This document shows, piece by piece, positions 2,357 through 56,780 of a DNA stretch of 64,000 nt. Source of the stretch: Rebecca billardiae RCC1528 (Eukaryota; Protista; Haptophyta); contig OZ251222.1 in NCBI GenBank assembly GCA_965240325.2, forward strand, positions 4,154,001-4,218,000, given 5' to 3'. The notes under the pieces are model-generated. The model was not told the origin of the DNA and ran no database searches. It worked only from the letters and a program-made list of their open reading frames with translations. Position 1 is the first letter of the stretch; every line of letters starts with the position of its first letter. Position numbers and translations under genes: made by a program.

Positions 2357-2515
2357 ATGCTCATGAGCACGGTGGACGGCGTGCAGCCGGGCAGCGTGGT
2401 GGTGCTGTCCGGGCTGACGGCGCGCGCCGAGCTGAACGGCGTGCGGGCGCGCGTCGTCTCCTTCGACGCGCCGAGCCGCCGCTACCGCGTCGAGCTGCTC
2501 GGCGCTGCCGCCGGT

Positions 2516-2549
<34 letters not shown>

Positions 2550-21305: not shown

Positions 21306-21387
21306 CGCGCAGTGGCGGCAGGCCTCTTTGCCGGCACACAAGCTCGTCTGCACCGGACACCGCGCCGACAAGGCCCGCCCGCGCGGG

Positions 21388-35765: not shown

Positions 35766-38108
35766 ATGCGGGCCGTGCATCTGCCAGCTGTTGCGTGCCT
35801 CGTACTCGTCACGGCCGTGCCCGCCTCCGGATGGATGCGCAGCGACGCCGGGCCGCGTGTGCGCGCGCGCCGTCCAGCCGCCCCGTCGCGCATGACGGCG
35901 CAGCCGGCATCACCACCATTTGACTTTGCGCGCAGCCTGGAGCTCGCAGCTCTGGCGTTCGAGGCGTACCAGCCGCCACCTGCGGGCACGGCGGAGTGCG
36001 GCTCCGACACGACGACGGTCATCCTCCACTCGCCCGAATTTGCGGCCAAGATGTACGAGGGCGCGCTCGAGGTGCACGTCACCGAGACGTCCGGCCTGCC
36101 GCGCTGGCCAAGGCACACCCGCGAGGCGGTGCTCACGGGGCCGGCGTGCGATCCGTACGTGCTGCTCTCCATGGTGGACGCGCGTGCGGGCACGCGCCGC
36201 CGCTTGGAGCTGAGCCAGGCGCGCGACGTGATCCGCACGGACACGAGGTGGCGACGCAGCGGCGCCGGGGCGAGCGAATCGAGCGCGGCCCCGGCAGGGG
36301 AGGAGGGCGGCGACGCGCCGGCGGGCTCGGGCGAGGTGCGCCCGGCGGAGGCGTCCGACGAGACCAGCGCGGCCAGGCCCGCGCTGACCGGCGGCTGGCT
36401 CTTCGTCGAGCGCGCCGAGCGCGCCTGCCTCCGCCTCGAGCTGCGCGACCAGAACGTCTTGTGCGCGGACGAGAGCCTGGGCCACGCCTTCCTGCCGCTC
36501 TCCGAGCTGCAGGGCGCGCTGGCCGACGGGGACGGCGCGGCGGAGGAGCACGTGCTGAGCGTGGAGTACCCGGCGCCGGTGGGGCCCGGGCCGCTCCTCG
36601 GCGTGGCGAACGGCTGGCTGCTCGGCGGCGTCGCGGGCGGCGCGGCCGGCCTCGTGGCGGGCGCGCTGGGCGCGGCGCGCACGAGCTGCGCGACGGTGAC
36701 GGTGCGCTGCCGGTACGTGCGCGTCGAGGGCGGGGGCGAGGGCTCGGTTCGGAGGGTGCCCGGGCTCGCGCAGCCGCCCGCGTGGCCGCCCGAGCGCGGG
36801 CTCGGCGGCTCGGAGGGCATCGACTGGACGCAGCTGCGCCCCTCCGCGGGCGAGGCCGACCCGTCCCGGTTCGCGCCGCTCGCGTCGATTGACAACGCGC
36901 ACACGGACACGCAGGCGACGCTCTGGTGCGACGCCGCGCGGCGCGAGCTCGTGCTCGCGTTCCGCGGCACGGAGCAGCTGCGCTTCCGCGACCTGCTCGT
37001 CGACGCGAGCATCACGCAGGTCGAGTGGGGCTTGGCGGGCGCGTCGGCCGCCGCGCTGTGCGACCGCGGCGCCGGCTTTGCGCCGCGCGTGCACGCGGGC
37101 TTTGCGGCCGCGTGGCGCAGCGTCGCGCCGCGCGTCGCCGAGCAGATCGTCGCCGCGATCGGCGCGCGCGGCGGCGAGCGGGGCGGCGCGCCGGGGTTCG
37201 GCGCGGCGGACGAGGCGCGCGCGTGGACGCTCTACTGCACCGGCCACTCGCTGGGCGGCGCGCTCGCCACGCTGGCGGCGCTCGACCTCGCGCAGGGCGC
37301 GCTGCCGCTCGGCCGCATCGGCCTGTACACACTCGGCGCGCCGCGCGTGGGCAACCCGGACCTGGCGAGCCTGGCGGACGCGCTGCTGCCCGAGGCGTTC
37401 CGGCTGGTGAACGGGCAGGACGTGGTGACGCGCATGCCCCGCGGCGCCGCCTCGGCGATGGCCGGCCCGGGCGTGAGCGGCGTGCTCGACTACGCGCACC
37501 CCGGCCGCACCGTGCTGATCGACGAGCGCGAGCCGCTGTGCACCGTGGCGGGCGCGGGGCTGGAGGGCGTGTGCCCGCTCGAGGTGATCGACTCGCCGTT
37601 CGACGACCCGCTCCGCGCGAAGGCGGGCGCGGATGCGGTGGAGGGCAGCGCGCGCGGCCTCGTGTCCGGGCTCGAGCGCGCGCTCGAGCGCGCGCTGCGG
37701 CTGGCGCGCAGCGACATGCAGCGCGCTGGGCTCGGCGCGGAGCCCGCCCTGGCGCTCGCGGGCGGCGGCGGACAGGGAGGGGCGGAACCCACGCCGCGGC
37801 CTCGCGGCGCGTCCATCGTCGCGCTCGCCCGCACCGTGCGCCGCACGACGCGCGCGGCCGCCGCGGACGTGAGCGCGACGATCGCCAAGAGCACTGGCGG
37901 CCGCGTGCGCCCGAGCGACGTGCTCAAGGCGACCGCGGCGCTGTTTGGCGTGCAGGGCGCGTTCGTGGAGGCGGAGCTTCAGCTGCTCGGCGCCATCAGA
38001 CGGGGCGATGCCCTCGCGCATCACCTCGAGCCGAGCTACTACGCGGCCATGGAGCAGGCCGGCCGCGCGGCCGCCACGGACTCTGAGACGCCGGCGGCGA
38101 CAAAGTGA
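35766..38108 (+). CDS. Class 3 lipase with C2-like domain, probably plastid-targeted
   Basis: Signal plus transit-like N-terminus. C2 motifs DPYV and LELRDQNV...DESLG. Lipase motifs LAFRGTEQ, VHAGF, TGHSLGGALA, G.PRVGN, RLVNGQDVV and AHHLEPSYY. Confidence 0.9.
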   Translation: MRAVHLPAVACLVLVTAVPASGWMRSDAGPRVRARRPAAPSRMTAQPASPPFDFARSLELAALAFEAYQPPPAGTAECGSDTTTVILHSPEFAAKMYEGALEVHVTETSGLPRWPRHTREAVLTGPACDPYVLLSMVDARAGTRRRLELSQARDVIRTDTRWRRSGAGASESSAAPAGEEGGDAPAGSGEVRPAEASDETSAARPALTGGWLFVERAERACLRLELRDQNVLCADESLGHAFLPLSELQGALADGDGAAEEHVLSVEYPAPVGPGPLLGVANGWLLGGVAGGAAGLVAGALGAARTSCATVTVRCRYVRVEGGGEGSVRRVPGLAQPPAWPPERGLGGSEGIDWTQLRPSAGEADPSRFAPLASIDNAHTDTQATLWCDAARRELVLAFRGTEQLRFRDLLVDASITQVEWGLAGASAAALCDRGAGFAPRVHAGFAAAWRSVAPRVAEQIVAAIGARGGERGGAPGFGAADEARAWTLYCTGHSLGGALATLAALDLAQGALPLGRIGLYTLGAPRVGNPDLASLADALLPEAFRLVNGQDVVTRMPRGAASAMAGPGVSGVLDYAHPGRTVLIDEREPLCTVAGAGLEGVCPLEVIDSPFDDPLRAKAGADAVEGSARGLVSGLERALERALRLARSDMQRAGLGAEPALALAGGGGQGGAEPTPRPRGASIVALARTVRRTTRAAAADVSATIAKSTGGRVRPSDVLKATAALFGVQGAFVEAELQLLGAIRRGDALAHHLEPSYYAAMEQAGRAAATDSETPAATK

Positions 38109-39499
38109 GCTTCAATCGCTTGCTGAGCCAAGCAGTCAGCAGTACTTGTGCACCCGGTGAACTGAGTAAACGAATGTACGGTATCCTTCGCCTGCCTTAC
38201 GGGTATTTGTTCATCAAGGAAGGGAGTATTACGTATTCACAATGGCGCTGCGCGTCAACTTAGGCTGGAAACCTGTTTCTAAACGCACGATGGCACGCCG
38301 GGCCGGTGGCCCGAGCTCGGAATTCCGACGCTCGGCCATGGGCGCCACAGGGGCGCCGCGGCGGGGCTGACGACGCGCGCGCGTGTGCACGTCTGGGCAC
38401 GGAGTGCGCGCTGCAATGACTGTCCCGTCTGCAGCACCACGCCCCGCGCTGTGAGTGAGAGTGTGGCCCGCGCCCAAGCGAAACGCCGGACGGGCGGCAC
38501 TCCGCCGACCTTGCCGTCCGCCGACCAACCCGCGGCCGCCTGCTGCAGCTCGTGGAAGGCACGCAGTCGCGCGCTCGCGCGTGGATGGCGGCCCTGCGCG
38601 TATGCGCCCGCCGCGCGTGCCGCTTCATCCGCTGGCACCGCACGCGAGGGCGCTCGTCGCGCGCAGTCGGCAGCTCGAGCCCTCCGCCGCCCGACCGGGC
38701 CGGCGCCACACCTCGCGCTCGTGCTCGAGCTGAGAGCCCGCCGCGCGCCCCGCGTTGCTCGCTGGCGCCGCACGCGAGCCGTTCGTCGCGCGACCGACCG
38801 CAAGGACGAGGGCGACCCTCGCCGTCGGGCTCGTGGGCTCTCGCTCTCTGTCGGCTTCGGACCCGGGACGCCGAGGCCGCGCGAGGTTGCTCCGACGCTC
38901 GTATGTCAAATGCAAGATGATACCCGCGTGCCAATATCAGCGCGCCCTTTCGCTCGTGAAATGTCTAGCGAGAAAGTGACGGTTCGTGTGAATGTGAAGT
39001 GTGAACTCGCGACACGACGAATGGGCCGATGCGATTCGCGCGAATGTGAGTATGCAAAGCGCCGAACGACGAGCGGCTTTTGACCGAACGACGAGCGGTT
39101 TTTGTCCTATCGAGCGCGTAAGTGGGTACGCGAATTGCGTTTATGTGATCCGGCACCCGGTGACCAAGGGGGCGCGTCAAAAAAAGGCCTGCGACGGGCT
39201 GGTCCCCAGCGTGAGAAGTCGTGCCTTTGTTCTCGTGGGTTTCCGCCAGAAATATCTGATGACATGAATTAACGACGTGGTATATCTGATGATATCTGAT
39301 GACATTAATACGTTGAATGAACTTGAAAGTGCGACATCAGTAGCGCGGTACCTCCCAATTGACGAAACGGCAACGGTATCACTATCTCCGCTTTGTGAGC
39401 GAGAACGCGCCGGATAAGACTCGCTGCATCTTTCGCAACGTCGACTTGACGAACATGCCGCGCCTGCCAAGGGCGGGGGCAGGCCAGCACGGAGTCCGC

Positions 39500-42400
39500 A
39501 TGAGGGTCGCCCTCGCCTTGCTGGGCGTGCTCGTGCGCGCGGGCGCGCTCGATCCGCGAGCATGCCCCGCGGGCGGGCCGTGGACCAACGTGATCTACTC
39601 GGCCGGGGCGAACGACTCTGTTTCCGTGCGCTCCGACGCCATGCCCGCGCTGCCTCCGAGCGCGACGAGCGTGTGGCATTGTGGCGCGCCGGCGTGCGCG
39701 GAGGGCGAAGCGGCGGACGGCTTCGACGGCACGATCGTCCTCGCGGGGCCCTCGTCGCTGCACCCCGACGACATCCACTGGGCCGTCTCCAGCACGATGC
39801 GGCGCGCGGCCGTGCTCTTCCTCGAGTGGCTGCACACGGAGCGCGGTGGCGTGCGCGTCGGGGGCGCGCGGTTCACGATGTGCGCGTACTGGGTGGGCGA
39901 CGGCTCCTCCACGACGCAGGTGGCGAACGCGACGGCGCACGCCCTGCGCCACGCGCGCGCCGACTTTGCGCTCGCCGGCTACGCGTCGTCGCGCACGCTG
40001 CACGCGGCGCGGCAGGCGCACGCGGACGGCGTGCTGATGCTCACCGCCGGGAGCGCGGCGACGCACGTGCACGCGCAGTCGAACCTGACGTTCGGGCTGC
40101 TGCGGGCGGGCGAGGTCTGGTCGCGCCTCGCCGCCGACACCATCATGGCGCGCGCGAGGGAGATCGACGCGAGCGGCGACACGAGCAGCCGGTGCGCGGC
40201 GCCTTTGTGCGCGCGGAGCCTGCACGCGGCGGTCGTGCGCGAGGGATGCGACGCGCCGCCGGAGGCGACGGCGCCGATCGACTCGGAGACGGCGTGGGAG
40301 GCGGCGAACTTCACCGTGTACGGCGGCGGCTCGCCCGGCGCCCGCCCGCTCTTCCAGCTCTGCGCGGGCATGTCGGTCTCCGACGCGGTGTCGCTGCTCG
40401 AGCCGATGCGCGCGGCCGGCGTGAACGTGCTGGTGGCGCTCGTGTACAGCCAGGTGGCGGAGGTGCTGGTGCGCGCGCTGGCGGCGATGGAGTGGACGCC
40501 GTACGCGGTGTACGTCGCGCCGGGCAGCTCCGCGGCGTGGCACGACGGCCGCGCCGCCGGCGGCAGCGCGCTCGCCGAGCTGTACGCGCTGCGCTCCGCC
40601 GCGTGGTCGGCCGCGCTGCGCACGCGCGGCCAGGTGTCCAACCTGACCTCGCACGAGTTCGTCGCGCGGTACGAGGCGCGCTGGCCGGGCGAGAGCCCGG
40701 ACTACCGCGGCGCGGCGCAGTTCGCCGCGCTCTGCGCGCTCGTCCACGCCATCGAGGCCGCCGGCTCCCTCGACACCGCCGCGGTCGTGCGCGCGCTCCG
40801 CGGCCTGCGTCTGACCGAGTTCTACTCGCTCATCCAGTTCGACGCCAACGGTCAGAACGACGGCGGGCTGGTGCTGGAGCAGCTGCAGCAGGGCGGCGTG
40901 GTGGAGGTGGTCGCGCCGGCGCAGGGCGCGTCGGCGCCGCTCGTCTTCCCCGCGCCCACCCTCGCGCGCCGCGCGTGCGAGGCGCGCACCTCGCCGCCGT
41001 GCAGCGCTCGCGGCGCGTGCGACGACGCGGGTGCGTGCGCGTGCGGCGCGGGCTGGCACGGCGCGGACTGCGAGCGGGCTGGCCTCGGCGGCGGCGGCGG
41101 GGCGGGCGGCGAGGGTGACGCCGCGGAGGACGGCACCGCCGCCGGCACCACCACCGTCGTGACCAGCCCCCGCGACGAGCCGCTGCCCGCCATGCTGAGC
41201 GGCAGCGTGCTGATCGCCGTGCTGCTCTCGACGTGCGCGCTGTGCGTGTGCGCGTGCGCGCTGCTGCTGCACACGCGCCGCACGCTCGCCGCGCTGCGCC
41301 AGGAGGTGTCGAGCTACCGGCGCGAGGCGGCGGATCCGCCGGTGCCGCTGCTCGTGATCTCGGACGCGGGCGAGGACCTCGACGACGAGATGGCGCTCAT
41401 CATGCTCCGCTTCCTGCAGGACGAGCGGCTGGTCGAGCTGCGCGGCGTCGTCGCCAACCTGACGCCCGAGTACGAGCGCGCGCGGCTGATCCGAGGCACG
41501 CTCGACCTGCTCGGGCTGCCCAACGTGCCGGTGGGCGTGGGCACGGACGGCGGGAGCGCGACGCACGGCGCGGGCTTCCTCGACTCCGCGCCGTACGCCA
41601 CCGAGTCCCACTCCGAGCGCATCCACGCGCTCGAGCCCGGGCGCGCGCTGCTGCACCGCGCGCTGAGCGCCGCGCCGCCCAAGTCGGTCACGCTGCTGTG
41701 CATCTCGTCGCTCAAGGACGCGGCGCTCTTCCTGCGGGACAACGGGCGGCTGTGCGCGGAGCGGCTGGAGCGCGTGGTGGTGATGGGCGGCGTGGACACC
41801 GACGCGAGCGCGAGCGCGGGCGCGCTCGTCCCCGACTCGGCGCACAACAACGTCTTCGACTCGGACGCGGCCACGTACTGCCTGCGCGCGTGCGTGTCCC
41901 TCCACATCCCGCTCACGGTCGTGACGAGGCACGCGGCGTACGCGGTGCCGGTGCGGCGGGAGATCTACGACGAGATCGCGCAGTCGGGCAGCCCGATCGG
42001 CTGGCGGCTGCGCAAGGCGCAGCGCGACTCGATCGAGGATCTGTGGCGCCGCTGCTGCGCGCCCGACGGCTCGGCCGAGCGGCGCGGGCTGCCCGCGCGC
42101 TGCGACCGCCAATGGTTCGCAACCACCTTCTGCGCGGGGCGCGGGCGCGAGCGCTCGGCGGACGACCCGATCTGGGACCTGGTGGTGTCGTTCAACCTGT
42201 ACGACGTGGTCGCGCTGCTCGCGGCCGTGCCCGCCGTCGCCGCCTTCCTCTTCAACGCGGACACGCGCGCGCTCGGCGTGCGCAGCCGCAGCTCGGGCGA
42301 GGTGACGGTTACGTCCGCGGTTACGTCCGCGGTTACGTCCGCGCCCGAGCGGCCGGCGCAGTGCTCGCGCGCCGACAGCTCCGCCAGCCTCGGCGGCGGC

Positions 42401-43427
42401 GGCGGGGGCAGCGGGCGCTCCGAGGAGTCGGCGAGCCTCGAGCTCATCGGGCGCTCGGCGGAGGACACGGGCGTGCGCGACGAGGCCGCGCTCCGCGCCT
42501 TCCTGCACGCGGGCATTGCGCGCGGCATCGGGCTCGGCCGCGCGGCCGCGTGGCGCGAGCCGCTGCTGCTCGTGCTGCGGGAGCGCGCGGGCGAGCCGCC
42601 GCCGCCCGCGCTGGCGGCGACGCTGCTGTGCGTGCGCGCGCTGATCGAGTTCAACGCGGTGCTGTGCGCGGCCGTGGTCATCGTGCGCGAGCCCGGCACC
42701 GCCGCCGCCGCCGAGCCCGCCGCGCCGCGCGCGCACGGCGCCGCGGCGGACGCGGCGCAGGCCGCGCGCGCGCGCGCCGCGCTCGACCTTGCAGGCCTGG
42801 TCGCCGCCATCGGCATCAAGGCGGCCGTCGGGCCGATCGTGCTGGAGGAGGTGGCGGAGGAGGCGGAGGGGTGCGACGCGGAGGGCATGGAGCGCTCGGT
42901 CTCCGCCGTCCGCCGCGCCTTCGACGAGTCCCCGCCCGAGGCCCTCCGCGTCGTCCTCCCGACCGGCTGCCCGTGGGCGCTTGCGCACTTTGCGCGCGTG
43001 CACGCCAAGCTGTTCCGCGAGCGCACGGCGCAGGTGCTCGGGCTGGGCGAGTGGAGCGCGGAGGCGGAGGGCGACGCGGCGGGGCCGGGCGCGGCCGACG
43101 GGCTGCCGCTCACGCCCCCGAGCCCCGCCGCGCCGTGCACCATCGAGCCGCCGCCCACGTGCCCCGGGCGCGCGGCGTGCGAGCGCGCGGGCGCGGCGCT
43201 CGCGACGCGCTGCGTGCAGCTAGGGGTGCCGTTGCTCGTCGCGCCGGCGGCGCTCGTGCGCGCGTGCGCGATGCCGCGCGCGGTGTACGACGCGCTGCCG
43301 AGCGTGGCGGGCGAGTTCGGCGCGTCGCTGCTCCGCTCGACGCGCGCGTACGTCGAGCGCGCCGTCGAGGCCGCGCCCGCGCCCGCGGCCGACGCGGCAG
43401 CGGCCGACGCGGCCGACGCGGCAGCGC

Positions 43428-43458
<31 letters not shown>

Positions 43459-44833
43459 TCAGCTGCCGCCCGAGCGCGCGTGGGCCGAGGCGGAGTTTGG
43501 GCTCGAGCCCGAGCCCGAGCGGCAGGGCGGCGGGGCGGCGGGCGTGTGGTCGCGCGTGGCGCGCGTCCCCGCCGCCGGCCCCGTCCTCGTCCTCGCGGTC
43601 GTGCAGTCACGCGCCGAGCGGCCGCTGCTCTGCGAGGGACAGACCTGCCAGCTGCGCGGCGCGACGCACCGCTGCCTCGACGAGATGGGCTCGGTGGAGG
43701 CGGACGGCGCGGGCGACGGCACCGTGGGCGCGCTGGCGCACCTGCTGCTCAAGGCGGCGTCGCTCTCCGCGGTCGGCTCGCTCGCGGCCGCACCGCTCCC
43801 CTCGCGCCGACCGGCGCGCGCCTCCTCGCGCTTCCCCCGCCGCTCCAGCCCAGGCACGCCGGCCGGCGCCGTCCGGTTCGAGCTGGGCGGCGGCGGGCTC
43901 GCGAGCGGCGGCGGCGGTGCCGGGCAGGGCGACAGCGTCGGCATCATCTGCGAGGGCGTGGGCTGGGTGAGCCTGGCCGACGCCGTGCCCGAGTGGCTGG
44001 GCCACGGCGCGCCCGCACACCCGAGTGCCGCCCAGCACGCCGACGAGCCGCCCGCCGCGCAGCAGCGCACGAGCCAGCAGCGCAGCTCGACGCGCACCAA
44101 CTCGACCGCCACCTCCTCCTCGTTCGCGCGCGCCAAGGACGGCGCGCTGCGCCGAGCGCGCACCCTCTCGCTCGCGGCGGCGGAGGCGGTGTCCACGACG
44201 GATTCCTCGAGCTTCCGCCGGCCCGCGCGCCGCTCGCGCAACCCGACCTCGGGCGCGTTCGCCTCGGGCGTCTTCGCCTCGGGCCTGGTGAGCACGCTGC
44301 GCCGCGGCTCTGCCGGCAGGGAGCACGCGAGCGTCGGCGCGGGCGCGCCGCCCGAGCGCCGCAGCGCCGCGCGCCAGAGCGCGCAGGCAGCGGGCGGCGG
44401 CGGCTTCGCAAAGCCGAGGCGCGGCTCCGAGGCCGCGCGCGCGCGCAGGCACGAGCAGCTGCGGCGCGACGCCGAGTGCGCCAAGGTGGACGCCCTGCTC
44501 GAGGACGCGCGCAGCGCCGGCGGCCGCGCGTCCGGCGGCCCGCAGCAGCCGCGCCGCTCTCGCACGCCTTCCTTCTCGCAGGGCTCCGGCCGCGCCCGCG
44601 TCAACCCGCTCACCTTCACGCCCAGCACGAGCGCGCGCCGCATGGCCAACCGCAACACGTCGCTGCGCGTGAATCCCGGCGGGCTCGGCTCGCTGCTGGC
44701 CAACCTGCGCGACGAGGACGAGGGCGATGAGCGCGCGGAGGAGGACGACTCCGACGGCGACGAGGACGGCGCCGACGGCCCGACGGACATCGTCCGAGCG
44801 GTGGGCACGCCAGACGGCGTCGGGCCTGGGTAG
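39500..44833 (+). CDS. Single-pass receptor-like protein: Venus-flytrap (type I periplasmic-binding) domain, EGF, TM, XopQ/HopQ1-like nucleoside hydrolase domain, degenerate second copy, disordered tail
   Basis: Signal peptide MRVALALLGVLVRAGA. VFT motifs ADFALAGYAS, FVARYEARWPGESPDYRGA, AIEAAGSLD..AV..AL and FYSLIQFDANGQN. EGF CSARGAC....CAC..GWHGADCE. TM at ~41192..41270. Hydrolase motifs LLVISDAGEDLDDEMAL, VVVMGG, AHNN.FD..AA and FNLYD. Confidence 0.82.
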
Positions 44834-45256: not shown

Positions 45257-47551
45257 TCAGCATGACGATGATGACGCCGCATCATCGGCATCATCATCGC
45301 GCGCATCATTTGTTGACGATGCTGTGTCGTCATCGGGCGCGCTGCTGCGCCTGACACTGCCAGCCGCGCCGCCCTCCGTGACGCCCGCAGCCGCCTGCTC
45401 CGCCGCCTCTTCCAGCAGCGCCAGCACGCGCGCGGGGAGGTGGTCGTGCAGCGCGCCCGCGTGCAGCAGCAGCTTGGAGTAGTGCGCGGGCTCGGCGAGG
45501 CCCACGCTCACCTCGCATCGCAGGGCCAGGGGTGGAGCAGCTCCAGCTGGCTCGGCCGCCGGCGCCTGGGCGGGCTCGGCGGCGCCCGGCTCGGCCGAGG
45601 GGGGGGGGGCGTTGGCTGCGGGCAGCAGCGGGGCGGCGGGTGCCTCTGCCTCCGCCCCGTGCGCCGCCTCCACGCCCGCCGCCGAGCCGCCGGACGCGCC
45701 GCCGGCCGAGCCGGCGGCAGCCTGCGCGCCGGCCGCGCCCGGCCGGCCGCGCGGCCGCCACTCGGGCGGCACGTGCAGCTGCCACAGCCGGCCGGGCGGG
45801 AAGTGGTGAGAGAGCCCGCCGCGCGCACAGTCCCACAGCGGCGGGGCGCGGCGCGCGCGCGCGGAGCTGGGCTCGGTCGAGGCGGGGGCGGGTGCGTCGG
45901 CGGGTGCGTCCAGCTCGCGCTCCGCCGACGCGCTCTCCAGCTCGGCCGCGGCCGGCGCGCGCGCCGTCGCCGACGGCCGCCCCAGTACAGAAGCCTCGGG
46001 AGGAGCGTCGGCCGTGCCGCGCGGCGCGCCGCCGCCGAGCGCCGAGCGGACGAGTGCCGCGGCGCCCGACACGCCCGCCTCGATCCCCGCCGCGACGGGC
46101 GCCCACACCGACGCGCGCTCCAGCTCGGCGTGCAGGTGCACCACGTTGACCGCGCACAGCCTCGGCACGAGGTCTGCGCCCACGACCGCGGCCGTCACAA
46201 ACTCACCGAGCGCGCGCGCGGTGCGGAGGTCGGCGATGGCGGGCGGCGAGATGGCGAAGCACCGGGCGCGCGCGCAGGACGGGGGCAGCGCCGCCGCGCC
46301 CCCGCCGCCGCACCCCTCCGCCGCCGCCCCCGCCGACACGTCCGCCGCCGGCTGCCGCAGCAGCGCGGTCGCGAGCGCCGCCGTGCCCGCGCCGAGAGAG
46401 TGCCCGACCAGGGTGAGTGAGTAATCCGGGTACTCGGCGGCGAGCTCGGCGAGCGCGGGGCGTGCGGAGGCGAGGACCGCGCGCGCGGCGCGGAGCATCC
46501 CCGCGTGCACGCTGCCCTCCGCCGGCTCACCCCCTCCGCCCCCCTCGCCGCCCTCGCCGCCCTCGCCGCCCGCCCCCGCCCTCGGCCGCAGCCGCAGCGG
46601 CAGGCAGTCCGCCTGCAGATCAGCGAGCACGTCGTGCAGGGAGTGCGTGCCGCGCACGGCGAGGACGAGGGAGCGCCAGGCGTGGTCGACGGCGAGGTAG
46701 TGCGCGGGGCACAGCGCCGTCGACGCCCACCTCGCGAGGCGCACGTCCGCGTGCGCCAGCCCGGTCAGCCTGCGCAGCGCGCGCGTGTGCGCGCCGCCGT
46801 CCACGTGCGCGTAGCCGCCGTGCGCCGCGTACCCAAGGGCAAACGCGGAGACGGAGGCGAGGTGGCCCGAGTGCGCGGCGAAGCCGAACGCGGCATGCGC
46901 GTGCGCCATGCCGCGCGCGAGGCCCGCCAGCTCCGCCGCGCCCTCCCTCCCCACGCCCGCCGCGCCGCGCAGCAGCGGCTCGAAGGTGGCGGCGTAGAGC
47001 TCCGCGTGGCGCGGCGCGAGAAGCAGCGCGGCCGACGGGTCGGGCGGGAGGAGCGCGTAGCGCCGCGTGCGCCAGAGCGTGGTGCCGACGAGGGCGAGGA
47101 AGGCGCCGACGCTCTCGCGCGCCTCGGCCGACTCCTCGCCCGCCGCCGCCGCGCCGGGCGCGGCCGTCGGCGGCGCGCGCGCCGAGGGCGGCACGAGGTG
47201 CCAGTACCGCCAGCGCACGCGGTCGGTCGGGCGGCGCACGGCGCGGCCGCCCTCGCGGAGGGCACCGGCGCGGCGCGTCGAGGTGCCGTGCAGCCAGCCC
47301 TCCGCGCTCGTGCCCTCGTGCGCGATCGGGCGCCACACCAGCGCGTCCGCGCTCGCGGCCGACCGCGCGCGCGCTGCGCGCCGCTCCGCGCGCGTCGGCG
47401 CCGCGCTCCACGCGCTCGCGCCCCACGGCGCGCCGGGCAGGATGGAGACGAGCTGCTGCACCTCCACGAGCAGCGCCGCCTCGGGCACTTCGTCCTCCTC
47501 CTCCTCCTCCTCCTCGTCGCCGCGTGCGCCCGGCGCGTCGGCGTCGCGCAT
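45257..47551 (-). CDS. Class 3 lipase, sn1-diacylglycerol lipase-like
   Basis: HYLAVDHAWRSLVLAVRGTHSLHDVLADL, VHAGML, LVGHSLGAGTA, CFAISPP, GADLVPRL and LHDHLP. Start uncertain. Confidence 0.87.
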   Translation of the reverse strand: MRDADAPGARGDEEEEEEEDEVPEAALLVEVQQLVSILPGAPWGASAWSAAPTRAERRAARARSAASADALVWRPIAHEGTSAEGWLHGTSTRRAGALREGGRAVRRPTDRVRWRYWHLVPPSARAPPTAAPGAAAAGEESAEARESVGAFLALVGTTLWRTRRYALLPPDPSAALLLAPRHAELYAATFEPLLRGAAGVGREGAAELAGLARGMAHAHAAFGFAAHSGHLASVSAFALGYAAHGGYAHVDGGAHTRALRRLTGLAHADVRLARWASTALCPAHYLAVDHAWRSLVLAVRGTHSLHDVLADLQADCLPLRLRPRAGAGGEGGEGGEGGGGGEPAEGSVHAGMLRAARAVLASARPALAELAAEYPDYSLTLVGHSLGAGTAALATALLRQPAADVSAGAAAEGCGGGGAAALPPSCARARCFAISPPAIADLRTARALGEFVTAAVVGADLVPRLCAVNVVHLHAELERASVWAPVAAGIEAGVSGAAALVRSALGGGAPRGTADAPPEASVLGRPSATARAPAAAELESASAERELDAPADAPAPASTEPSSARARRAPPLWDCARGGLSHHFPPGRLWQLHVPPEWRPRGRPGAAGAQAAAGSAGGASGGSAAGVEAAHGAEAEAPAAPLLPAANAPPPSAEPGAAEPAQAPAAEPAGAAPPLALRCEVSVGLAEPAHYSKLLLHAGALHDHLPARVLALLEEAAEQAAAGVTEGGAAGSVRRSSAPDDDTASSTNDARDDDADDAASSSSC

Positions 47552-48440
47552 GTGCTTTCCGTCCTCTCGCAGCCGGCTGGTGCCGGCCGGCGGGCGCGAA
47601 TCAGCCGTCCGTCCTTGGGCAGCGCTCCGCCGGAAAAGCGGCAAACAGAAAAGAAAAGCCGCCACCAAAGCACAAGGTCGTCGCGAGGCGGCGGCGCAGC
47701 CGCAGCTGACGGGCGCGGCCGTGGATGTTTGGCGCGCCGTCGTCAACCGGAGGGCGGATGCGGGAGGTGGAGGGCTGAGTCGACATCATGATGACGACCA
47801 GGGGCAGGGGCAGACCGCGCGCGCAGGATTTCGTGACGACCGCCCGCATGATCGTGATTCACCTCGCGTGATGGCCGTGATCGCGGGCGGCCCCACTCTG
47901 AGTCAGTGGTAACGCTGCGACTGATGGCCAGAGAGGCCACTGCCGACGGTGCCGACGATGCGGACCAGTTGCGCCCGCGCAAGACTAGCAGGCGCGGACG
48001 ACGCAGTCTTATCTAGCTTGATCGAACTGGCTGAGTATAGCAACGTCGACGACGACTACTCAAAAACTGATGCGGGCCGTGTGCGCGGTACCGTTCGGAT
48101 GCGCGCGCGCTGCTGCGAGCACTGCCACTGGCCCACTGGCACTGATGAGACTGATATGGGCAGTAGCTACTACGGTGCTACTTAGTATATATATATATAT
48201 ATATCGATCTATATACTACTTAGACACATCGCGGTATATAATCTGAGATGTGCACGTAGCATATAATAGGCTAGTAGTAATGATGATAGCGTCGTCGTCA
48301 TTATTGTCGAGCAGCGGTGACATCACCTTGCTGACAATCGCAATGGAATACGGACGGATTACGGAGCGCGCGATGATGATGACGAATGCGCTGCTGCTGC
48401 ATCACGCCCACGCGGCCTCACCCGCCCTCGTCCGCGACCT

Positions 48441-51400
48441 TCACGACGGGATGCGCGGAGGCTGCGGCGGCGACTGCGAGCGCGAGCGTGAGGGCGCGGT
48501 CGACGCGCCTCGCGACGTGCCTCGGCTCCCGCCCGCCCCGAAGCCGGGCGGCGAGCGCGAGCGTGAGCGTGAGCGCGAGCGTGAGCTGGAGCCGGCGTGC
48601 TCGCTGCTGCCCACGCGCGGCGAGGCGGCGCCGCTGCTCGCGCCGCCGGCGCCGCCCAGCGGCGGCGGTGAGCGCGAGCGCGAGCGCGAGCGCGAGCGCG
48701 AGCGCGAGCGTGAGCGCGAGGCGGCGCGCAGGATGGCGGGCACCTCGCCCAGCCCGATCGGCTGCAGCGACGGCGAGCGCGAGCGCGAGCGGTCGCGCTC
48801 GCCCCTGGTGATGGCCTGCCGCAGCGCGCGCTCTCGGAAGCCGGCCGCGCCGGGCGAGAGCATGCGCCCGCCGTCCGCGCGGCTGGGCGGGGCCGGGCGC
48901 TGCGGCGTGACGCCGAGGACGCGCCGCCCGCCCGGCGCGGTCGCGTCGCGCACGATGCGCGCGGCCCCCGCCGCCTCCGCCGTCGGGCTCGGCCGGCGGC
49001 CGAGGAGGCGGCGCAGCCAGCGGCCGGCGCCAAGCTTGGGCGCGCGCGACCCCGCGCCGCCGCGCGCCGCGGCCGCCGCCTCCGCCGCCGCGTGCTGCCG
49101 CTCGGAGCGGCGGAGCAGGACGCCGGCGCCGGCGCTCGCGCAGGTGAGCAGGCCGAGCGCGAGCGCGACGGGCAGCGCGAGCGCCACGCGCACCGGCAGC
49201 TGCGCCGCCCAGCAGCCGAAGCGCAGCGGCGCGGCGCCGGGCGGCGGCGGCCCTAGGATAGCGTGCAGCGGCGAGCGCGGCGCGCCGCCGCGCGTCTGCA
49301 GCCGCAGCGTGGTGTGGTGGCGCAGCTGGTGGACGCGGAGCAGCGCGGCGGCGCGGCGCTCGCGCGTGCGCAGCGCGAAGAGCAGCAGGCACAGCAGCAC
49401 GAAGCCGTCCACCAGCAGGATCACCTGCAGCGGCGTGAGCGCGAACGCAAAGTCGATCGCGCGCGGCCGCAGCGTGACGCGCTGCTCGGACGAGGAGCTG
49501 AACGCTTCGTCCGCCGTCACGACGCCCACGTCGCGCGCGAGGGAGAAGAGCTCGAGGGAGAGCGTGCCGGCGGGCGCGCGCCCGCCCAGCCCCAGCGCGT
49601 CGCTCGCCGCGCCCGCCGCCGCCGCGACGAACCCGACGATCTCGCCCGCCGCCGCCCAGAGGCCGGACCCCTCGTCGAAGAGCGCGGCGAACGCGCCCGC
49701 GCCCAGCTCGGAGGGCGGCACGCGCGTGAGCGGCAGGCGGACGGAGGCGGCGGCGGGGAGGTCGGCGAGCGCGGCGGGGAGGGGCGCGCCGGTGGCCGCG
49801 TCCCACACGCGCACCGAGAGCACGCGCGACGCGAGCGCCTCCCCCGCCGCCGCGCGGTGCAGCTCGACGTCCCAGCCCGCGACGAGCACGGCCGCGCCGC
49901 CGGCCGCGCCGCCGGCCGCGCCGCCGGCCGCGCCGCCGGCCGCGCCGACGCTCAGGCTCTGCGGGAGCGTGGCGACGCAGCGCTCGGCGGCGAGCTGCTC
50001 GGGCGTGGCGAGCGTCGCGCCGGCGAGCGCGGCGGCGGGGCCCACCCACGCGCGCGCGCGCACCGCGCGCGTCAGCACCACCGCCGCCTGCTCCGACGGC
50101 GCGCGCGCGGCGAGGCTGGCGCCGAGTGCGGCGTGCGCCGACGCCTGCGCGCGCAGCATCCGCGCCGCGTGCGCGCCGCCGTCGGTGGGCAGGCCGGCGG
50201 CGGAGCGCATCGCCTCGCCGAGCGCGTGCTCGGCGGCGCACGCGGACAGCGCGCCGACCAGCGCGCGCAGCGGGCCGAGCGGCAGCGACCACGGCGCCGT
50301 CGCGCCGAGCGGCGCCGCGGCCGCGGCCGCGAGCGCGGCCGCGGCAACGTCGGCCGCGTGCGGCGCGAGGGCGTCGCACGCACCGTCGCCGAGCGAGCCG
50401 GGCGGCGCGGCGCCGGCGAGCGCGAGCGCGAGCGAGGCGTGGCGCGCGACGGTGGCGCGCGACGGCCGCGCGAGCGCGAGCGCCGCGCGCGCGCGCAGCG
50501 CGAGCCGCCGCCGCGCCTCGCGCGCGGCGGCGCACGGCGCGGCGCCGTGCGCGCCCGCGCCCGCGCCGCAGCCAAGCGCGGCGTCGGCCGCGTCGCGCGC
50601 GGCGCCGGCGGCGAGCAGGGCGAGCGCGGCGCCGGGGCCGTCGGCGCTGGCGAGCCGCGCGTCGACCGCCTCGATCGCCGCGTCGGACGCGTGCGCGCCC
50701 GCCGCACCCGCCGCGTCCACCACGCCCGCCGCCTCCTCGTCGCCCGCGTCGGCGGCGACGAGCGCGCGCGCGCCGAGCGCGCTGCTGACGACGCCGACGA
50801 CGGCGTGCGCGCCCGGTGGCAGCGGCACGCAGCAGAGGGACGGGTCGAGGGCGGGGGCGGAGAGCGGGAGCGCGGCGGACGCGGCGTGCGCGCTCGCGCT
50901 CGAGCCGCCCGCCGCCGCGCCCAGCCGCGCACCCTCCTCCGCCACCGCGTCCGCGCGGTCGGCGTCATCGTCGAGCCAGCCGCGCAGCGTGCGGCGCGCG
51001 CCCGCCGCGGCCGCGCCCGCGTTCGCTCCGTCGTCGGCCGCGCCCGCGGGCGCGCGCGCGCCGCGCTTGAGCCAGAAGGCGTAGTGCAGCGGCAGGTCGG
51101 ACGCGGGGTCGGCGGCGCTCCAGCGGCTCAGCTCGAACGCCCACACCGCCGTCCCCGCCGGCGCGCGCCCCGCGCTCGCCGCGCCCTCCGCGCGCGCCGC
51201 GCGCGCGTCGATCCTGCCTCCGAGCGGCGGCGGCGCGGTGCGCACGACCAACGTGGCGGCCGCGCTGTACCCGGAGTCGGTGGGCGCGCGGCGGAGGGAG
51301 AAGGCGTAGCTCGCGCCGGGCGCGAGCGCGTCGGCGCGCACGAGCAGCGTCGGCGCGCCCAGCGGCGAGCGCACCACGCCGAACCCCGCGTCGAGCGCGC

Positions 51401-53391
51401 CGAGCGAGCCGGCGGGCGGCGCGAGCGCCGCTCCCTCCGCGGTCGCGGCCGCGCGGCCGGCCGCGGCGCTCGAGTAGTCCGCGGCCAGCACGCTCCACTC
51501 GGCCGCGCCGAAGGGCTCGAGCGGCGCGGCGGCGAGCGCGGCGGCCTCGGACGCGGAGGCGGGCGCGAGCCCGCGCAGCGCGAGCGCGCCGCCGTCGTGC
51601 GCGAGGCCATCCGACGCGGGCGCGCCGTACAGCTGCGCGGAGGCGGCGGGCGCGTCGGCGGCGAGCGCAACGCTCACGCGCGCGGCCGCGCTCGCCGACT
51701 GCAGCGAGGCGCGCGCGCGCGCGTGCAGCGTGGCGGTGGCGGTGACGGTGAAGACGTACTCGCCGGGCGCGGGCATCGGCGCGTCGGCGCCCTCGGCGCC
51801 GCCCAGCGTGAGCAGCCCGCCCGCGCCCAGCCCGCCGAGCTCGAGCCCGGCGCACGGCGCGCCGCCCGCGTCCGCGCGCGCGCACGCCCACGCGAACGCG
51901 AGCGCGCCGCCGGACGCGTGCTCCGCGCCCGACGCGTGCGGGTCGAAGGAGGCGCGCGCGTCGAGCTCGAGCACGCCGGCGGCGCCGACGGTGCGCGAGG
52001 TCCCCCCCGCGATGCCCACCACCGGCGCCGCCTCCGCCGTGCGCACGCGCAGCGGCGCGGACGCGGTGCCGTTGCCGCCGAGCGCGCCGCCGCCGCCGCC
52101 GCCCGCCTCGGCCGCCGAGTCCGCGCCCGCGCGCGCGGCGCCGAGCGCGCCGTCAAGCCTCGCGCTCAGCCACGCGTCGAAGCCGAGCTCGGCGGCGGCG
52201 GGGTCGAAGGGGCGGCCGTCCACCTCGATCCACGCGAGCACCGCCGCCGTGTACGACCGCCCGGCGCGCAGCGCGCCCGGCGGCAGCCGCAGCTCGGCGG
52301 GCGCGGCCGCGGCGCCGAGCGCGGCCGCGGCCGCGGCGGCCGCGTCGTCGAGCGCCCCCCAGCGGCCGCCATACGCGGCCGCGGCGCGCTCGAGGAGCGT
52401 GGCGTTGGGGAGGGCGGCGAGCTCGGCGTCGGAGGCGGCGTCTCGCGCGTACAGCGCGCCGTCGCGCAGCACGAACGCCTCGCGCGCGTACGCCACGCCC
52501 GCCGCCTCGTAGTGCGTCTCGTTGAGCTCGGTCGCGCCGCCCGGCACCGCGAGAGGCAGGCCGCTGATGTTGAGCAACGCGTCGCGCGCGGCCGCGGAGA
52601 GCGGGGCGAGGGCGGCGGAGCGCGAGGGGGTGAGGCGTGCGAAGCCGAGGGCGGAGGCGCCGAGGGCGAGCGCGAGCGAGCGGTTCGCCAGCGCGCCCGC
52701 CGCGCCGAGCCCGTCGGGCGGCGCGCCCGACGCGTCGTCGCGCACCGCCCACGCCAGCCGCAGCGCGCCGCCCTCGGGCGCGCACGGCGGCAGCGACGCG
52801 GACGCGCCGACCGTGCCGCCGGCGAGCGCGCCGAGCTGGAGCTCGGCGGGCGCGTGCACGGTGAGGACGGGCGAGGTGGACGGCGGCGCGGGCGCGTCCA
52901 CGCCCGCCGCCGCCGCCCAGTCGCCCGCGCCGATGCGCACCTCCGCGTCCGCCGCCTCGCCCCACGGCGCGCGCACGCGCAGAGCCAACACGAGCGCGCG
53001 CGCCGCGCCCGCGCCGCCGCGCGCGGCCGCCGCGGCCGCGTCCGCCGCGGCGACGGCGGCGAAGGCGGCGGGCGGCAGCGCGAGCTCGAGGCTGTGCGCG
53101 CCGGCGCCCGCGTCCGCGAGCGCCGCGCGCAGCGCGCCCGCCGCGTGCGAGTGCGGCGGCACCGCCCACTGGTACGCCAGCCCCGCCGCGCCGCCGCCGA
53201 GTGACATCAGGGCGTGCACGCGCGCGCTTGCGTTGGTGTCGGCGCCGCTCGGCGCGAGCGCGGCGCCGGTCGAGGCGGGGGCGCAGGCCGCGGGCGCGGG
53301 CACGCGCAGCTCGCGCGGCGCGACGATCACGGCGCGCACGCCGCCCGCGCCCGCGCCCGCCGCCGCGCCGAGCGGGAATGGCGCGCGCGCG

Positions 53392-53442
<51 letters not shown>

Positions 53443-56400
53443 TCGGCGGCGTCGGCCGCGCTGCGCACGCGCGCGCGCGCGTCCGCGCGCGCGCACACGT
53501 TCACGCCGCCGAGCGAGCAGCCGACGACGCCCGGCTGGTCGGGCGCGAGCACGCCGGCGCGCACGCCGACGACGTCGCCCGGCCGGATCGGCGCGTCCGC
53601 GTGCGCCGCCGCGACGAGCGTGCGCGCGCCCGCCCACACGCAGCGCACGGCCGCGTCCGCGTGCGCGCGCGCGCCGCGCAGCCTCGATAGCGTGTGTCCG
53701 TCCAGCAACGCGCCGCACTCGAACACGCCGCCGGAGACGAGCGGCTGGGTGCGGTGCGCGCCGCGCGGGTCGAGCTCGAGCGCGAGCGTCGCGCGGTCCG
53801 CGCTCAGCGTCGCGCTGAGCAGCGCCAGCGGCCACGCGCCGCCCGCCTCGTCGAAGACGAAGGAGGGAGCGCCGGTGCTGTTGGCCGCGCTGCCGTTCGC
53901 CCAGCTGCCGCTGGCGGGGGCGTACACGGCGTCGATGCCGTTGAGCGCCAGCCCCACGCGCACGCCGCGCTCCGCGCCCGCGCGCAGCGCCTCGCACACC
54001 GCCATCGTGCCGTTGAGGAAGAGCGGCGCGCCCGCCCCTCCCGCCGGGCCGTAGCCGCCAAAGACACACACCGCCGCGCCGCCGCCGCCGCCGCTGCCGT
54101 TGCGCGCGGCGCCGGTGCCGTTGGCGCCGCTGCCCGAGCCCGGCTGGAGGAGCAGCGCGTCGAAGCCCGTGCCGCGCAGCGTGACGCGCGTGCCCGGCGC
54201 GCCGTGCGCGGGGTACACCTCCTCGATCGACGGCTGCGCGTACAGCGCCAGCGGCAAGGCGGCGGACGCCGAGGCTTCGGCTTCGGCAGAGGCGCGCGCG
54301 GCGGGCGCGCTGCCGGCTGGCACGAGCCGCACGCTGCCCACGCCGGCCTGCGCGGCGGGGGGCGCGTCGCAGGCGAAGTGGCCGTCGGCGGGGCTGCCCA
54401 CCGGGCGCGCGGGCGTGCGCACCTCCGCGCCCACGCCCGGCAGCCCGAACGCGCACTCGAGCAGCTCCCACGCGCCCGCGCCGCCGTCGGCCGCGGCGAG
54501 CGCGCGCCCGAGCTCGCTCGCGCGCAGCGCGAGCGCGGTGCCGCCCGCGCCGAGCGGCGCGCCCGCCGGCTCGGGCGGCGCGTCGAGGTCGGTGAGGCGC
54601 GCGCCGTCGGGCACGAGCGTGATGCTCGAGGGCGCGCAGCAGAAGAGCGCCTCGAGCTCGTCCAGCCCGGAGCCCTCGAGCGCGAGCGAGACGCGCACCG
54701 TCGCGCCGCGCACCGCGCTCGCGTTGGCGTGCGCGCCCGCGGCGGCGGCGGCGGCGCCGAGGCCGAGCGCGGCCGCGGGCGGCGCCTCGCACGTCGCGGA
54801 CGCGCCGTCGGGCGCGACGCGCGCGGGCGCGCGCGCGAGCAGCGCGCCGCCCTCCGCGGCGCGGAAGCGGCACTCCGCGCCGCCCAGGTCCGCGAGGCCC
54901 GCGCCGTGCACCGTCAGGTTGGACCCGCCGCCCGCGCCGCTCACGCGCGGCGCCACGCGCGCCACGCTGGCCACGTATTGCGTGAAGGGCGCGGCCGTGC
55001 CGACGGGCGCGCCGGCGGCGTCGAGCAGCGGCAGCGGCAGCGCGAAGCCCGCGCCGCCGCCGTCGGCCGCGCGCCACGGCGCGAGGTCGAGCAGCGAGAG
55101 CGCGCGCACGAGCGGCGGCTGCGAGCCCGCCGCGCCGAGCGCCTCCGGCGCGGCCGGCACGTCGCACGCGCACGCGCCGTCCGCGCCGAGCGAGCCGTCG
55201 GCGCCGGCGCCGAGGTCGGCGGCCGCCTCGTGCGGCGCGCGCGCGCGCGCGGGCACGAGCACGCCGTCGAAGGCGCACGCGAGCGCCGCGCAGTCCTCGA
55301 GGTTCGCGCCGCGCACGAGCAGCACGCCGCCGCCCTCGGCGGGCGCCGAGAGCGGGCGCACGCTCGTGAGACTGAGCGCGGGCGGGCTGGGCGGCGGCGG
55401 TGCGGGCGAGGGCACGGGGCGGCACCACGCGGTCGTCGGGCAGGCGGTCGTGGGCTTGCGCACCTTCGCCTGGCCGATGATGCGCGAGAGCTGCACCGTC
55501 GAGTCGAGCGCGCCGCCCGTCGCGGTGAGCGCGTCGAGCTGCGCGACCGCGAGAGCTGAGCGTGCCGCCTCCTCGTCGTCCGCGCCGCCGCCGCCGCCGC
55601 CTCCGCCGTCGCTCGTCGCGTTGGTGCCGTTGAGGTGCGCGGTGGCGTTGGTGGCGTTGGAGGTGGCGTTGGACGGCGGCGAGGGCGGCGGCGCGCCCGG
55701 CCCCGCCGCGTTGTACGCCGCGAAGATGCTCGCGAGCGCGGGCAGCACGTCCTCCTCCGAGTGCTGCTGCGCCGCGTTGATGCGCGACACCACCTCGGCG
55801 GCCGCGCTCACGTTCTGCACGAGCAGAGACTCGGACTCGGCGGCGGAGACGGCGGCGGCGGAGGCGCGCATCGTCGCGGCGACGGCGCGCGAGAGCGAGG
55901 GCATCGTCGCCGCGGGCGCCGGCGACGCGAGCCGCGCGTTCGCCGAGGCGACGATCGCGCCCACCGCCGTCTCGTTGCCAAAGTCGAGCGAGCAGCTCGC
56001 GCCGGTCGCGTTGCGCCGCACGTTGGCCTCGACCAGGTCTGCGATGTGCGCGGCGAGCGCGCGCTGCACGGCGAGCGCGGACTCGCGCATGCGGTCGGGG
56101 GAGGCGGTGGCGAGCGCGCTCGCGGAGCTGTAGCTCGCCTTCACGCCCGCGACGAGCGTGGTGAGCGAGTGCAGCGTCGACGCCTTGCTCAGCAGCCGCG
56201 CGTGCGCCGCGCCGACGTCGCCGCCAAACCACGCGGGCGGGATCGGGTCTTCGGAGAGCAGCGTGGCCGGGTCGAATCCGAGGCACTCGCCCACGACGGT
56301 GGGCGCGACCTCGTCGACGGTGGCGGCGGCGTCGGAGACGGCGAAGCCGACCCGCTTGATCTGCGGCGGCGTGAGCCCGCGCGACGCGATCGCCTCGATC

Positions 56401-56739
56401 GTGTCCTGCACCACCGTCGTCACGGACGAGATGGTGGACGAGCCGAACGGCGCGCGCAGCGGGATGCGCACGCGGAAGCCCGTGTCCGAGTCGACGCACG
56501 CCGTGTCCGCGTCGGTGGTGGCGATGGTGTACGGGCGCCGGCCGTACCGCGCGTCGAAGTTGAACTGCGCGAACGAGCCCACCGCGTCGGTGAGCGCGCT
56601 CGGCTCCTCGCCCGCGTCGAAGAGCCCGTCGCCGTCCAGGTCGACAAAGACGGTGCAGCCGCGCAGGTAGCCGTCGTACGCGTGGCCGACCGGGAGCGGC
56701 GGCGGCGAGGGCGGCGGCGTGGGCGGCGGCGAGGGCGAG

Positions 56740-56780
<41 letters not shown>

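Follow-up and report, generated by a model that had tools for sequence, protein, structure and literature searches.

What does a protein gain from a second copy of its own enzymatic domain, if that copy lacks every residue known to be necessary for binding the metal and the ribose? This question is raised by a gene of the haptophyte Rebecca billardiae RCC1528, which lies in a 64,000-nucleotide stretch of contig OZ251222.1 (assembly GCA_965240325.2, positions 4,154,001 to 4,218,000 of the forward strand), here called the window. The gene occupies an unbroken open reading frame (ORF) of 1824 codons on the forward strand (39359-44833; residues are numbered with codon 1 at 39359), and this ORF contains both an intact hydrolase domain, D1, related to the bacterial effector XopQ, and a second, degenerate domain, D2. 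A preliminary description of the locus had proposed that the second segment was a catalytically dead, regulatory copy of the first. The reading favoured here, to which we assign a probability of about 0.65, is that the gene encodes a receptor-like protein in which an active D1 has its dead paralogue D2 as a structural or allosteric partner. The elements of the pair are as follows.

41321..42532, forward strand: D1, a XopQ/HopQ1-like domain of nucleoside-hydrolase fold, residues 655-1058 (NCBIfam, Pfam and PDB matches; AlphaFold2 model)
41363..41386, forward strand: Ca2+-site motif DxxxDxDD of D1, residues 669-676 (alignment to 7jlu_B and key-column table)
41843..41851, forward strand: H829-N830-N831 of D1, equivalent to XopQ Y279-N280-N281 (alignment to 7jlu_B and key-column table)
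42200..42205, forward strand: Y948-D949 of D1, equivalent to XopQ Y398-D399 (alignment to 7jlu_B and key-column table)
42539..43798, forward strand: D2, a degenerate copy of D1 predicted to be catalytically dead, residues 1061-1480 (homology, AlphaFold2 model and Foldseek)
42578..42607, forward strand: loop of D2 after strand beta-1, at the site of the former Asp motif, residues 1074-1083, RERAGEPPPP (alignments)
43574..43579, forward strand: A1406-G1407 of D2, in place of the Tyr-Asp of XopQ Y398-D399 (alignments)

D2 is a true, strongly diverged paralogue of D1. The preliminary description had listed seven pairs of short motifs recurring in the same order in both segments, and all seven are collinear and mutually aligned in a MAFFT alignment of 96 domains, in which D1 and D2 share 22% identity over 319 aligned positions; the second segment, which it had placed at 42560-43770, is real, with boundaries that needed to be widened slightly. 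BLASTP aligns the two domains directly (24% identity over 150 residues, E=1e-4), and their local Smith-Waterman score of 94 was reached by none of 1000 composition-preserving shuffles (mean 42.0, standard deviation 6.3, maximum 75; z=8.3). The profile or structural similarity that had been proposed as the test of the relationship was found in both forms, as hhalign joined four D2-type domains (A1) to 15 intact domains (A2) with 98.9% probability (E=3.3e-17), and the top PDB match of the D2 model was XopQ. The hhalign span pairs D2 columns 122-528 with nucleoside hydrolase (NH) columns 112-335, leaving out the N-terminal third, which the 96-domain alignment does pair.

Database searches place D2 in the same family. 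A D2 query retrieved the second domains of the relatives P0014 (85+81 bits) and P0011 (48 bits), and also matched, at the homologous position, intact domains of P0001 and other proteins. When a profile of four D2-type domains was searched against 1.84 billion representatives, it matched 118 proteins at E<=1e-3, 50 of them at E<=1e-10, and all belonged to the XopQ-like family. D2 alone gave no family match in Pfam (E<=1), NCBIfam or the PDB sequences, and a word search restricted to D2 returned nothing, probably because Ala-rich words swamped the candidates; a full hidden Markov model (HMM) search later found the relatives. The only matches to D2 in these family and sequence scans were to HsaA-type oxygenases, at chance level (E=0.006-0.46). 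These blank searches in Pfam, NCBIfam, the PDB and by words, together with the Ala-rich sequence, are what speaks for the resemblance between D1 and D2 being chance or low-complexity noise, such that no second domain exists. That explanation is refuted by the shuffle test, by hhalign, by the exclusively XopQ-like matches of the library-wide profile and by the Foldseek match to XopQ (E=5.5e-13), which together leave it a vanishingly small probability.

The fold of D2 is predicted to be that of D1. Modelled alone with AlphaFold2, D2 has a predicted local distance difference test score (pLDDT) of 81.1 and a predicted template modelling score (pTM) of 0.83, and the leading Foldseek matches of this model are the XopQ structures 4p5f_A (E=5.5e-13), 4kl0 and 7jlu_B (range to 1.6e-12), with target-normalised TM-scores of 0.65-0.67. 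Fifty-five PDB entries matched at E<=0.001, and among those listed all are XopQ or nucleoside/riboside hydrolases, with XopQ at ranks 1-4; compared with E=5.5e-13 for XopQ, RihA reaches 5.6e-6, and the modelled fold of D2 is nearer XopQ than the classical nucleoside hydrolases. In a second model of 843 residues, covering both domains and built from tandem proteins, the D2 core has a pLDDT of 80-90 with the same order of elements, the D1 core has a pLDDT of ~90-98, and the predicted beta-alpha-beta elements follow one another identically in D1 and D2.

It is the active site that D2 has not retained. The preliminary description had reported the DxxxDxDD motif missing, and where D1 carries D669, D673, D675 and D676, equivalent to XopQ D116, D120, D122 and D123 (in native numbering, which is the 7jlu_B chain index minus 13), the corresponding loop of D2 indeed reads RERAGEPPPP. 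The key columns of the automatic 96-domain alignment are D-D-D-D / H-N-N / Y-D in D1 and R-G-A-L / P-G-R / A-G in D2; the Asp-motif loop of D2 is poorly alignable, and its residues in register after strand beta-1 are RERAGEPPPP, but no key residue is present on either reading. In the place of the NN segment, D2 has a variable Pro/Ala-rich insert, and the Tyr-Asp position is occupied by AG, AG, SG and EG in P0010, P0014, P0021 and P0012, respectively. D2 is therefore without the four motif Asp residues, both Asn of the NN pair and the C-terminal counterpart of XopQ D399, and, as all the residues known to be necessary for metal and ribose binding are gone, the terms dead copy and enzyme/pseudoenzyme pair used for the locus were apt. 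The XopQ double mutant D120N+D399N is catalytically inactive on 2' cyclic ADP-ribose (2'cADPR; bioRxiv 10.64898/2026.06.15.732069), and since D2 has lost the equivalents of both of these jointly essential residues, it is well supported, at the level of aligned residues, that D2 would be unable to bind Ca2+ or to hydrolyse a substrate by the mechanism of the family.

A pocket without catalysis might nevertheless bind, and D2 could be a non-catalytic ligand sensor that holds a nucleotide or sugar in the old or a remodelled pocket and thereby gates D1 allosterically. Its fold is kept with high model confidence, polar residues specific to D2 are invariant in its four closest orthologues (among them E38, N40, R161, E162 and H378, in the numbering of the D2 fragment), and sugar-binding modules of NH-like type have been discussed for Sde_0182 (PMC8910321). 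Yet all of the Ca2+ ligands with which the family holds the ribose diol are lost and the NN segment has given way to its variable insert, while the former Asp loop is unconserved even among the four closest D2 orthologues, which speaks against binding having persisted at the original site. A sensor of this kind is consequently rather unlikely.

D1 has the opposite character. It matches the NCBIfam XopQ model with E=1e-47 (162.8 bits) and Pfam PF01156 (IU_nuc_hydro) with 43.8 bits, above the gathering score of 34.2, and its match to PDB XopQ 7jlu_B (E=4.2e-34) compares with E=2e-5 for the best classical nucleoside hydrolase, such that D1 is by sequence nearer XopQ than these enzymes. It is not a XopQ equivalog. 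That NCBIfam class (NF041355) denotes a type III secreted effector, defined by a score of >500 bits, a bacterial origin and an N-terminus secreted by the type III secretion system, whereas D1 scores 162.8 bits against the cutoff of 500 and belongs to a eukaryotic nuclear gene in which an ectodomain and a transmembrane helix precede it. At the position of XopQ Tyr279 it has His829, where algal relatives have Gln, His or Asn. D1 is probably an active Ca2+-dependent ribosyl hydrolase of an ADP-ribose-type nucleotide, its activity and its substrate both being judged from sequence; the substrate class is suggested by the kinship with XopQ and by the fusion of a NUDIX domain in the relative P0003. 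XopQ itself is a Ca2+-dependent O-glycosidase that converts 2'cADPR to ADP-ribose (bioRxiv 10.64898/2026.06.15.732069). Within D1, an insertion at residues 989-1020 (42323-42418), with a short VTSA repeat and a Gly run, appears disordered (pLDDT <50), and it lies between the last beta-strands and a C-terminal strand and helix. As this strand and helix follow the insertion, D1 ends at about residue 1058, and not at residue 975 where the HMM match stops.

Is the pair peculiar to this gene? A survey of the 96 domains, by domain chaining and a table of their key columns, identified tandems in which an intact domain is followed by a dead one in about 25 protist relatives, the dead domains typically replacing the first Asp by Gln and the last by Ser, Asn, Thr, Ala or Gly. 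Both domains are intact in P0001, P0002, P0004 and P0005 and near-intact in P0006 and P0007, while in P0003, P0008 and P0009 the polarity is reversed, with the Asp motif absent from the first domain and the second intact; it seems that one active site of the two was lost on more than one occasion. A quick maximum-likelihood tree parts 62 intact-like domains from the 34 second domains that are dead, by a branch with 100% support in the Shimodaira-Hasegawa-like approximate likelihood ratio test (SH-aLRT), and D2 of the window falls into a fully supported clade of five with P0014, P0021, P0010 and P0012, in all of which an intact D1 lies upstream. One of the relatives belongs to Diacronema lutheri, and the others are protist proteins of the MMETSP and EukProt collections. 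Judged by these sequences, the pairing of an enzyme with its dead twin is old and widespread in the algal HopQ1-like family, a point that the preliminary description had overlooked. Pfam detects the intact domain alone in the tandem relatives.

Further domains are fused to some of these tandems. In a scan of fifteen relatives, the only matches were NUDIX (P0003), the families of the P0010 and P0012 ectodomains, and an aminotransferase match below threshold. The NUDIX domain of P0003 is N-terminal, besides the tandem, and this fusion hints, on domain association, at chemistry of the ADP-ribose type. Several of the soluble relatives start with short hydrophobic segments or with Met-Gly, suggestive of membrane anchoring.

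The degenerate sequence of D2 might in principle have arisen by reading DNA in the wrong frame, or across an intron. The coding sequence and its support are these.

39500..44833, forward strand: the whole coding sequence, a single exon (uninterrupted ORF, third-position composition, and homologous blocks collinear with P0010, P0012 and P0014)

The probable start is Met48 (39500), with Met33 (39455) as the alternative, and the stop codon is at 44831-44833. G+C content at third codon positions (GC3) is 95-100% in all segments of the ORF, including D2, the low-complexity inserts and the C-terminal tail, while the flanks of the gene have 45-67% GC without periodicity. Within D2, GC3 is 97% throughout, inserts included; hence D2 is read in the ORF's own frame. 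An intron or untranslated insert within D2 is ruled out by this uniform GC3 and by in-frame inserts in orthologous assemblies, the P0014 orthologue (JGI assembly 3300016802, taken as a transcriptome) carrying these D2 inserts in frame as well. The contig of P0014 has a frame break of its own elsewhere, as the ectodomain, transmembrane helix and start of D1 are in another frame than the rest (L001:38-2164 and L001:1359-4901); this would reflect an assembly frameshift or a retained intron, and the database protein is hence N-terminally truncated. The window is extremely GC-rich, and in other frames the gene is overlapped by several spurious ORFs, each longer than 1000 codons (39305-43003 on the reverse strand and 41233-44730 on the forward strand); in this genome, ORF length by itself is no guide to coding, and the true frame was picked by homology and codon bias. 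A six-frame search of the window with the HMMs of both D1 and D2 matched the receptor ORF only, and found no further copies of either domain. The closest relatives are protist proteins, including KFE25_002800 of the haptophyte Diacronema lutheri, and nothing in the sequence points to human DNA.

The remainder of the protein resembles a receptor, with the following parts outside the two domains.

39500..39547, forward strand: signal-peptide-like hydrophobic N-terminus, residues 48-63 (judged by reading the translation)
39548..40975, forward strand: putative extracellular domain like the type-I periplasmic-binding proteins (LivJ/ANF-receptor superfamily), residues 64-539 (match to P0131)
40976..41077, forward strand: EGF-like module, residues 540-573 (sub-threshold Pfam matches and the cysteine pattern of the translation)
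41192..41272, forward strand: single transmembrane helix, residues ~612-638 (Kyte-Doolittle)
43799..44830, forward strand: C-terminal tail of 344 residues (1481-1824), rich in Ala, Gly, Arg and Ser (composition; presumed disordered)

The ectodomain had no direct match in Pfam. A word search aligned it over 87% of its length to P0131 (E=1.9e-16, 25% identity), which is annotated as a 'branched-chain amino acid transport substrate-binding protein' and carries PF01094, PF13433 and PF13458, and its PDB matches to Leu/Ile/Val-binding proteins are weak (E=0.011-0.07). The EGF-like module matches Pfam EGF_Teneurin (E=1.4e-4) and EGF_2 (E=6.5e-3), both under the gathering score. The hydropathy profile has a 19-residue Kyte-Doolittle peak of 2.73 at residues 617-635, the sole strong peak outside the folded domains, and a juxtamembrane helix of this kind stands 15-20 residues upstream of D1 in the window protein, P0010 and P0012. 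The C-terminal tail is taken as coding because its GC3 is 95%, and it has no Pfam or NCBIfam family match; nor did Pfam find a kinase (Pkinase) or cyclase (Guanylate_cyc) domain anywhere in the ORF. From this order of segments we infer a single-pass type-I receptor-like membrane protein of a GC-rich alga, most likely a pavlovophyte, with the LivJ/ANF-type domain and the EGF module outside the cell, and D1, D2 and the tail inside. The ectodomains of its relatives are unrelated to its own LivJ-type and EGF combination, being Laminin_G_3 with cadherin-like/Big_9 in P0010 and a PstS-type PBP_like_2 in P0012. Hence the D1-D2 tandem appears to be a reusable intracellular cassette, sharing the transmembrane helix but attached to unrelated ectodomains.

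The history and function of the pair may then be reconstructed as follows. An ancient tandem duplication of the hydrolase domain would have given rise to D1 and D2, after which D2 would have kept its fold and dropped all catalytic and metal-binding residues. D1 would hydrolyse an ADP-ribose-type nucleotide, as XopQ does 2'cADPR, and D2 would pack on D1 as an intramolecular pseudo-dimer, either stabilising D1 or coupling its activity to the state of the receptor and its ectodomain. The tandem model's pTM of 0.77 suggests that the two domains hold a defined position relative to each other. The regulatory role of D2 we infer by analogy, the model being the receptor-type tyrosine phosphatases, in which an inactive, membrane-distal D2 serves an active D1.

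Several considerations weigh against this reconstruction. Firstly, the packing of D2 on D1 is drawn from that pTM of 0.77, and membership of the family does not in itself imply a pseudo-dimer, since XopQ is reported to be monomeric (PMC8910321). Secondly, 29 of the 60 rows in the alignment behind the D2-alone model are intact domains, which biases that model towards the hydrolase fold, and the alignment behind the tandem model is only partly independent of it. Thirdly, D2 evolves very fast, its terminal branches measuring 1-2 substitutions per site, and its Ala/Pro/Gly-rich composition was flagged by the tree tool, meaning long-branch attraction could be exaggerating the single origin of the dead domains. 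Fourthly, 2'cADPR as the substrate of D1 is only a lead, given the His at the Tyr279 position and a score far under the XopQ equivalog cutoff. Finally, relaxed constraint on D2 is a live alternative.

Under such relaxation D2 would be a relic, a spacer with a residual fold and without specific function. The very long branches, the odd composition and the large low-complexity inserts in three loops would all be expected of it, as would the identity to the nearest orthologue of ~35-40% in D2 compared with 62-68% in D1. A decaying spacer is harder to reconcile with the full set of core secondary-structure elements and the 41 columns that are invariant among the four closest D2 sequences, which are only 25-40% identical and come from proteins with different ectodomains. 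Furthermore, dead second domains persist in the ~25 divergent relatives, and D2 has neither a stop codon nor a frameshift and a codon bias as strong as that of D1. We consequently regard the relic as doubtful.

A newly gained function is a further alternative. D2 has conserved motifs without a counterpart in D1-type domains, including an L-R-A-L-I-E-F-N block and a His near its C-terminus, which is what neofunctionalisation, in which D2 would catalyse or bind at a newly formed site, would leave behind. But Pfam, NCBIfam and the PDB offer no other family for D2, which displays no recognisable catalytic constellation, making this a very improbable explanation. The receptor with an active D1 and a dead partner D2 is accordingly retained as the preferred account of the locus.

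Tandem paralogues with one intact and one degenerate site, in an arrangement conserved in relatives, are what is found here, and this arrangement has precedents in unrelated enzymes. Receptor-type protein tyrosine phosphatases have an active D1 in tandem with an inactive or weak D2, for which a regulatory role is documented. They are likewise single-pass proteins with a membrane-proximal active domain and a membrane-distal, dead paralogue that keeps its fold; their fold and chemistry are unrelated to those of the window protein, and the regulatory D2 that is documented there would apply here by analogy. The JAKs similarly pair a catalytic domain with a paralogous dead one, as JH1 and JH2. The preliminary description had instead likened D2 to the pseudokinase of receptor cyclases. 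Receptor guanylyl cyclases of the NPR-A type consist of an ANF-receptor ectodomain, a pseudokinase and a cyclase, and the comparison gains from the LivJ/ANF-type ectodomain of the window protein, its single transmembrane helix and its intracellular enzyme and pseudoenzyme. It fails at the pseudoenzyme itself, which in the cyclases is a dead kinase, unrelated to the cyclase and located between the membrane and the catalytic domain, whereas D2 is D1's own paralogue and distal to it. The D1/D2 pair of the receptor tyrosine phosphatases, rather than the pseudokinase, would therefore be the nearest functional analogy.

Among proteins of the same fold, the bacterial type III effectors XopQ and HopQ1 (PDB 4KL0, 4P5F, 7JLU) share with D1 the fold, DxxxDxDD, the NN pair and Tyr-Asp, and with D2 the fold alone. 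They are secreted, single-domain effectors, whereas the window gene encodes a eukaryotic receptor-like membrane protein with a second, dead copy; Tyr279 of XopQ compared with His829 of D1, and the equivalog cutoff of 500 compared with 162.8 bits, separate D1 from them further. HopQ1-like proteins (HLPs) with a non-canonical calcium site were described from Aureococcus, Thalassiosira and Emiliania by Piechocki et al. 2018 (PMC6019455), and this algal clade belongs to the same family as the window protein. In that study the sequences were trimmed to one NH-like domain, and tandems, dead second domains and receptor architectures are unmentioned; literature searches found the HLP and XopQ papers and, within the literature covered, no account of a tandem, dead domain or receptor form. 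Sde_0182 of Saccharophagus degradans contains an NH-like module that is inactive on nucleosides within a multidomain protein (PMC8910321), and so has in common with D2 an NH fold in a multidomain setting, but it keeps its Ca2+ site and has no intact paralogue as a partner. In Gephyrocapsa huxleyi, cogent1101_i1 is a receptor-like TIR protein with leucine-binding-like and EGF-like regions and one transmembrane helix (PMC12489294). Likened by description only, its ectodomain follows the same plan as that of the window protein, with an intracellular TIR domain, an NAD-related signal producer, in place of the hydrolase tandem.

The surroundings of the gene are those of eukaryotic nuclear DNA, on the evidence of neighbouring ORFs for class-3 lipases, a PAQR/HlyIII protein and a zf-MYND/ankyrin protein. 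ORFs for class-3 lipases (PF01764), which are possibly paralogues, flank the receptor gene at 35766-38108 on the forward strand (E=5e-22) and 45257-47746 on the reverse strand (E=1e-18). Two further ORFs are typical eukaryotic genes, one at 19158-22259 on the reverse strand, with a C-terminal HlyIII/PAQR domain after a long N-terminal extension, and one at 2222-5413 on the forward strand, which combines ankyrin repeats with a zf-MYND finger at its C-terminus. The reverse strand also carries a giant ORF (48441-63875; 5144 codons), whose 5' part, especially 56697-63992, is a proline-rich (SPPP)n array resembling extensins and other hydroxyproline-rich glycoproteins, which runs off the end of the window and contains ~10 copies of a 402-bp (134-residue) higher-order unit. 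This array accounts for the GC content of 81-85% and the GC skew of +0.4 in the last 8 kb.

The function of XopQ and HopQ1 in cleaving the TIR immune signal 2'cADPR has been newly assigned, and their algal homologues were known as single NH-like domains. What is added here is that algal proteins of this family are built as tandems, with one copy systematically dead and missed by Pfam and NCBIfam, and that in pavlovophyte-like algae the tandem would sit on the cytoplasmic side of receptors whose ectodomains are interchangeable. The plan shared with the receptor-like TIR of G. huxleyi (PMC12489294) is the ground for a more speculative and distinctly tentative proposal, that these haptophyte proteins are receptor-type 'erasers' of TIR-derived cyclic ADP-ribose signals, in which the ectodomain controls a XopQ-like hydrolase through its dead twin. 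If so, the sensor ectodomain would be amino-acid-binding, phosphate-binding or lectin-like in different paralogues, the eraser receptors would mirror the receptor-like TIR 'writers' of G. huxleyi, with the same leucine-binding and EGF plan, and XopQ would be a stripped-down relative of an endogenous eukaryotic module for signal termination. Even if D2 is a mere scaffold, its recognition is a useful correction to the annotation of the whole protein family. The locus offers a concrete, testable system for asking in what way a dead paralogue supports the active domain beside it, in a fold without a prior description of such a pairing, and whether microalgae regulate ADP-ribose-derived second messengers via receptors at their surface.

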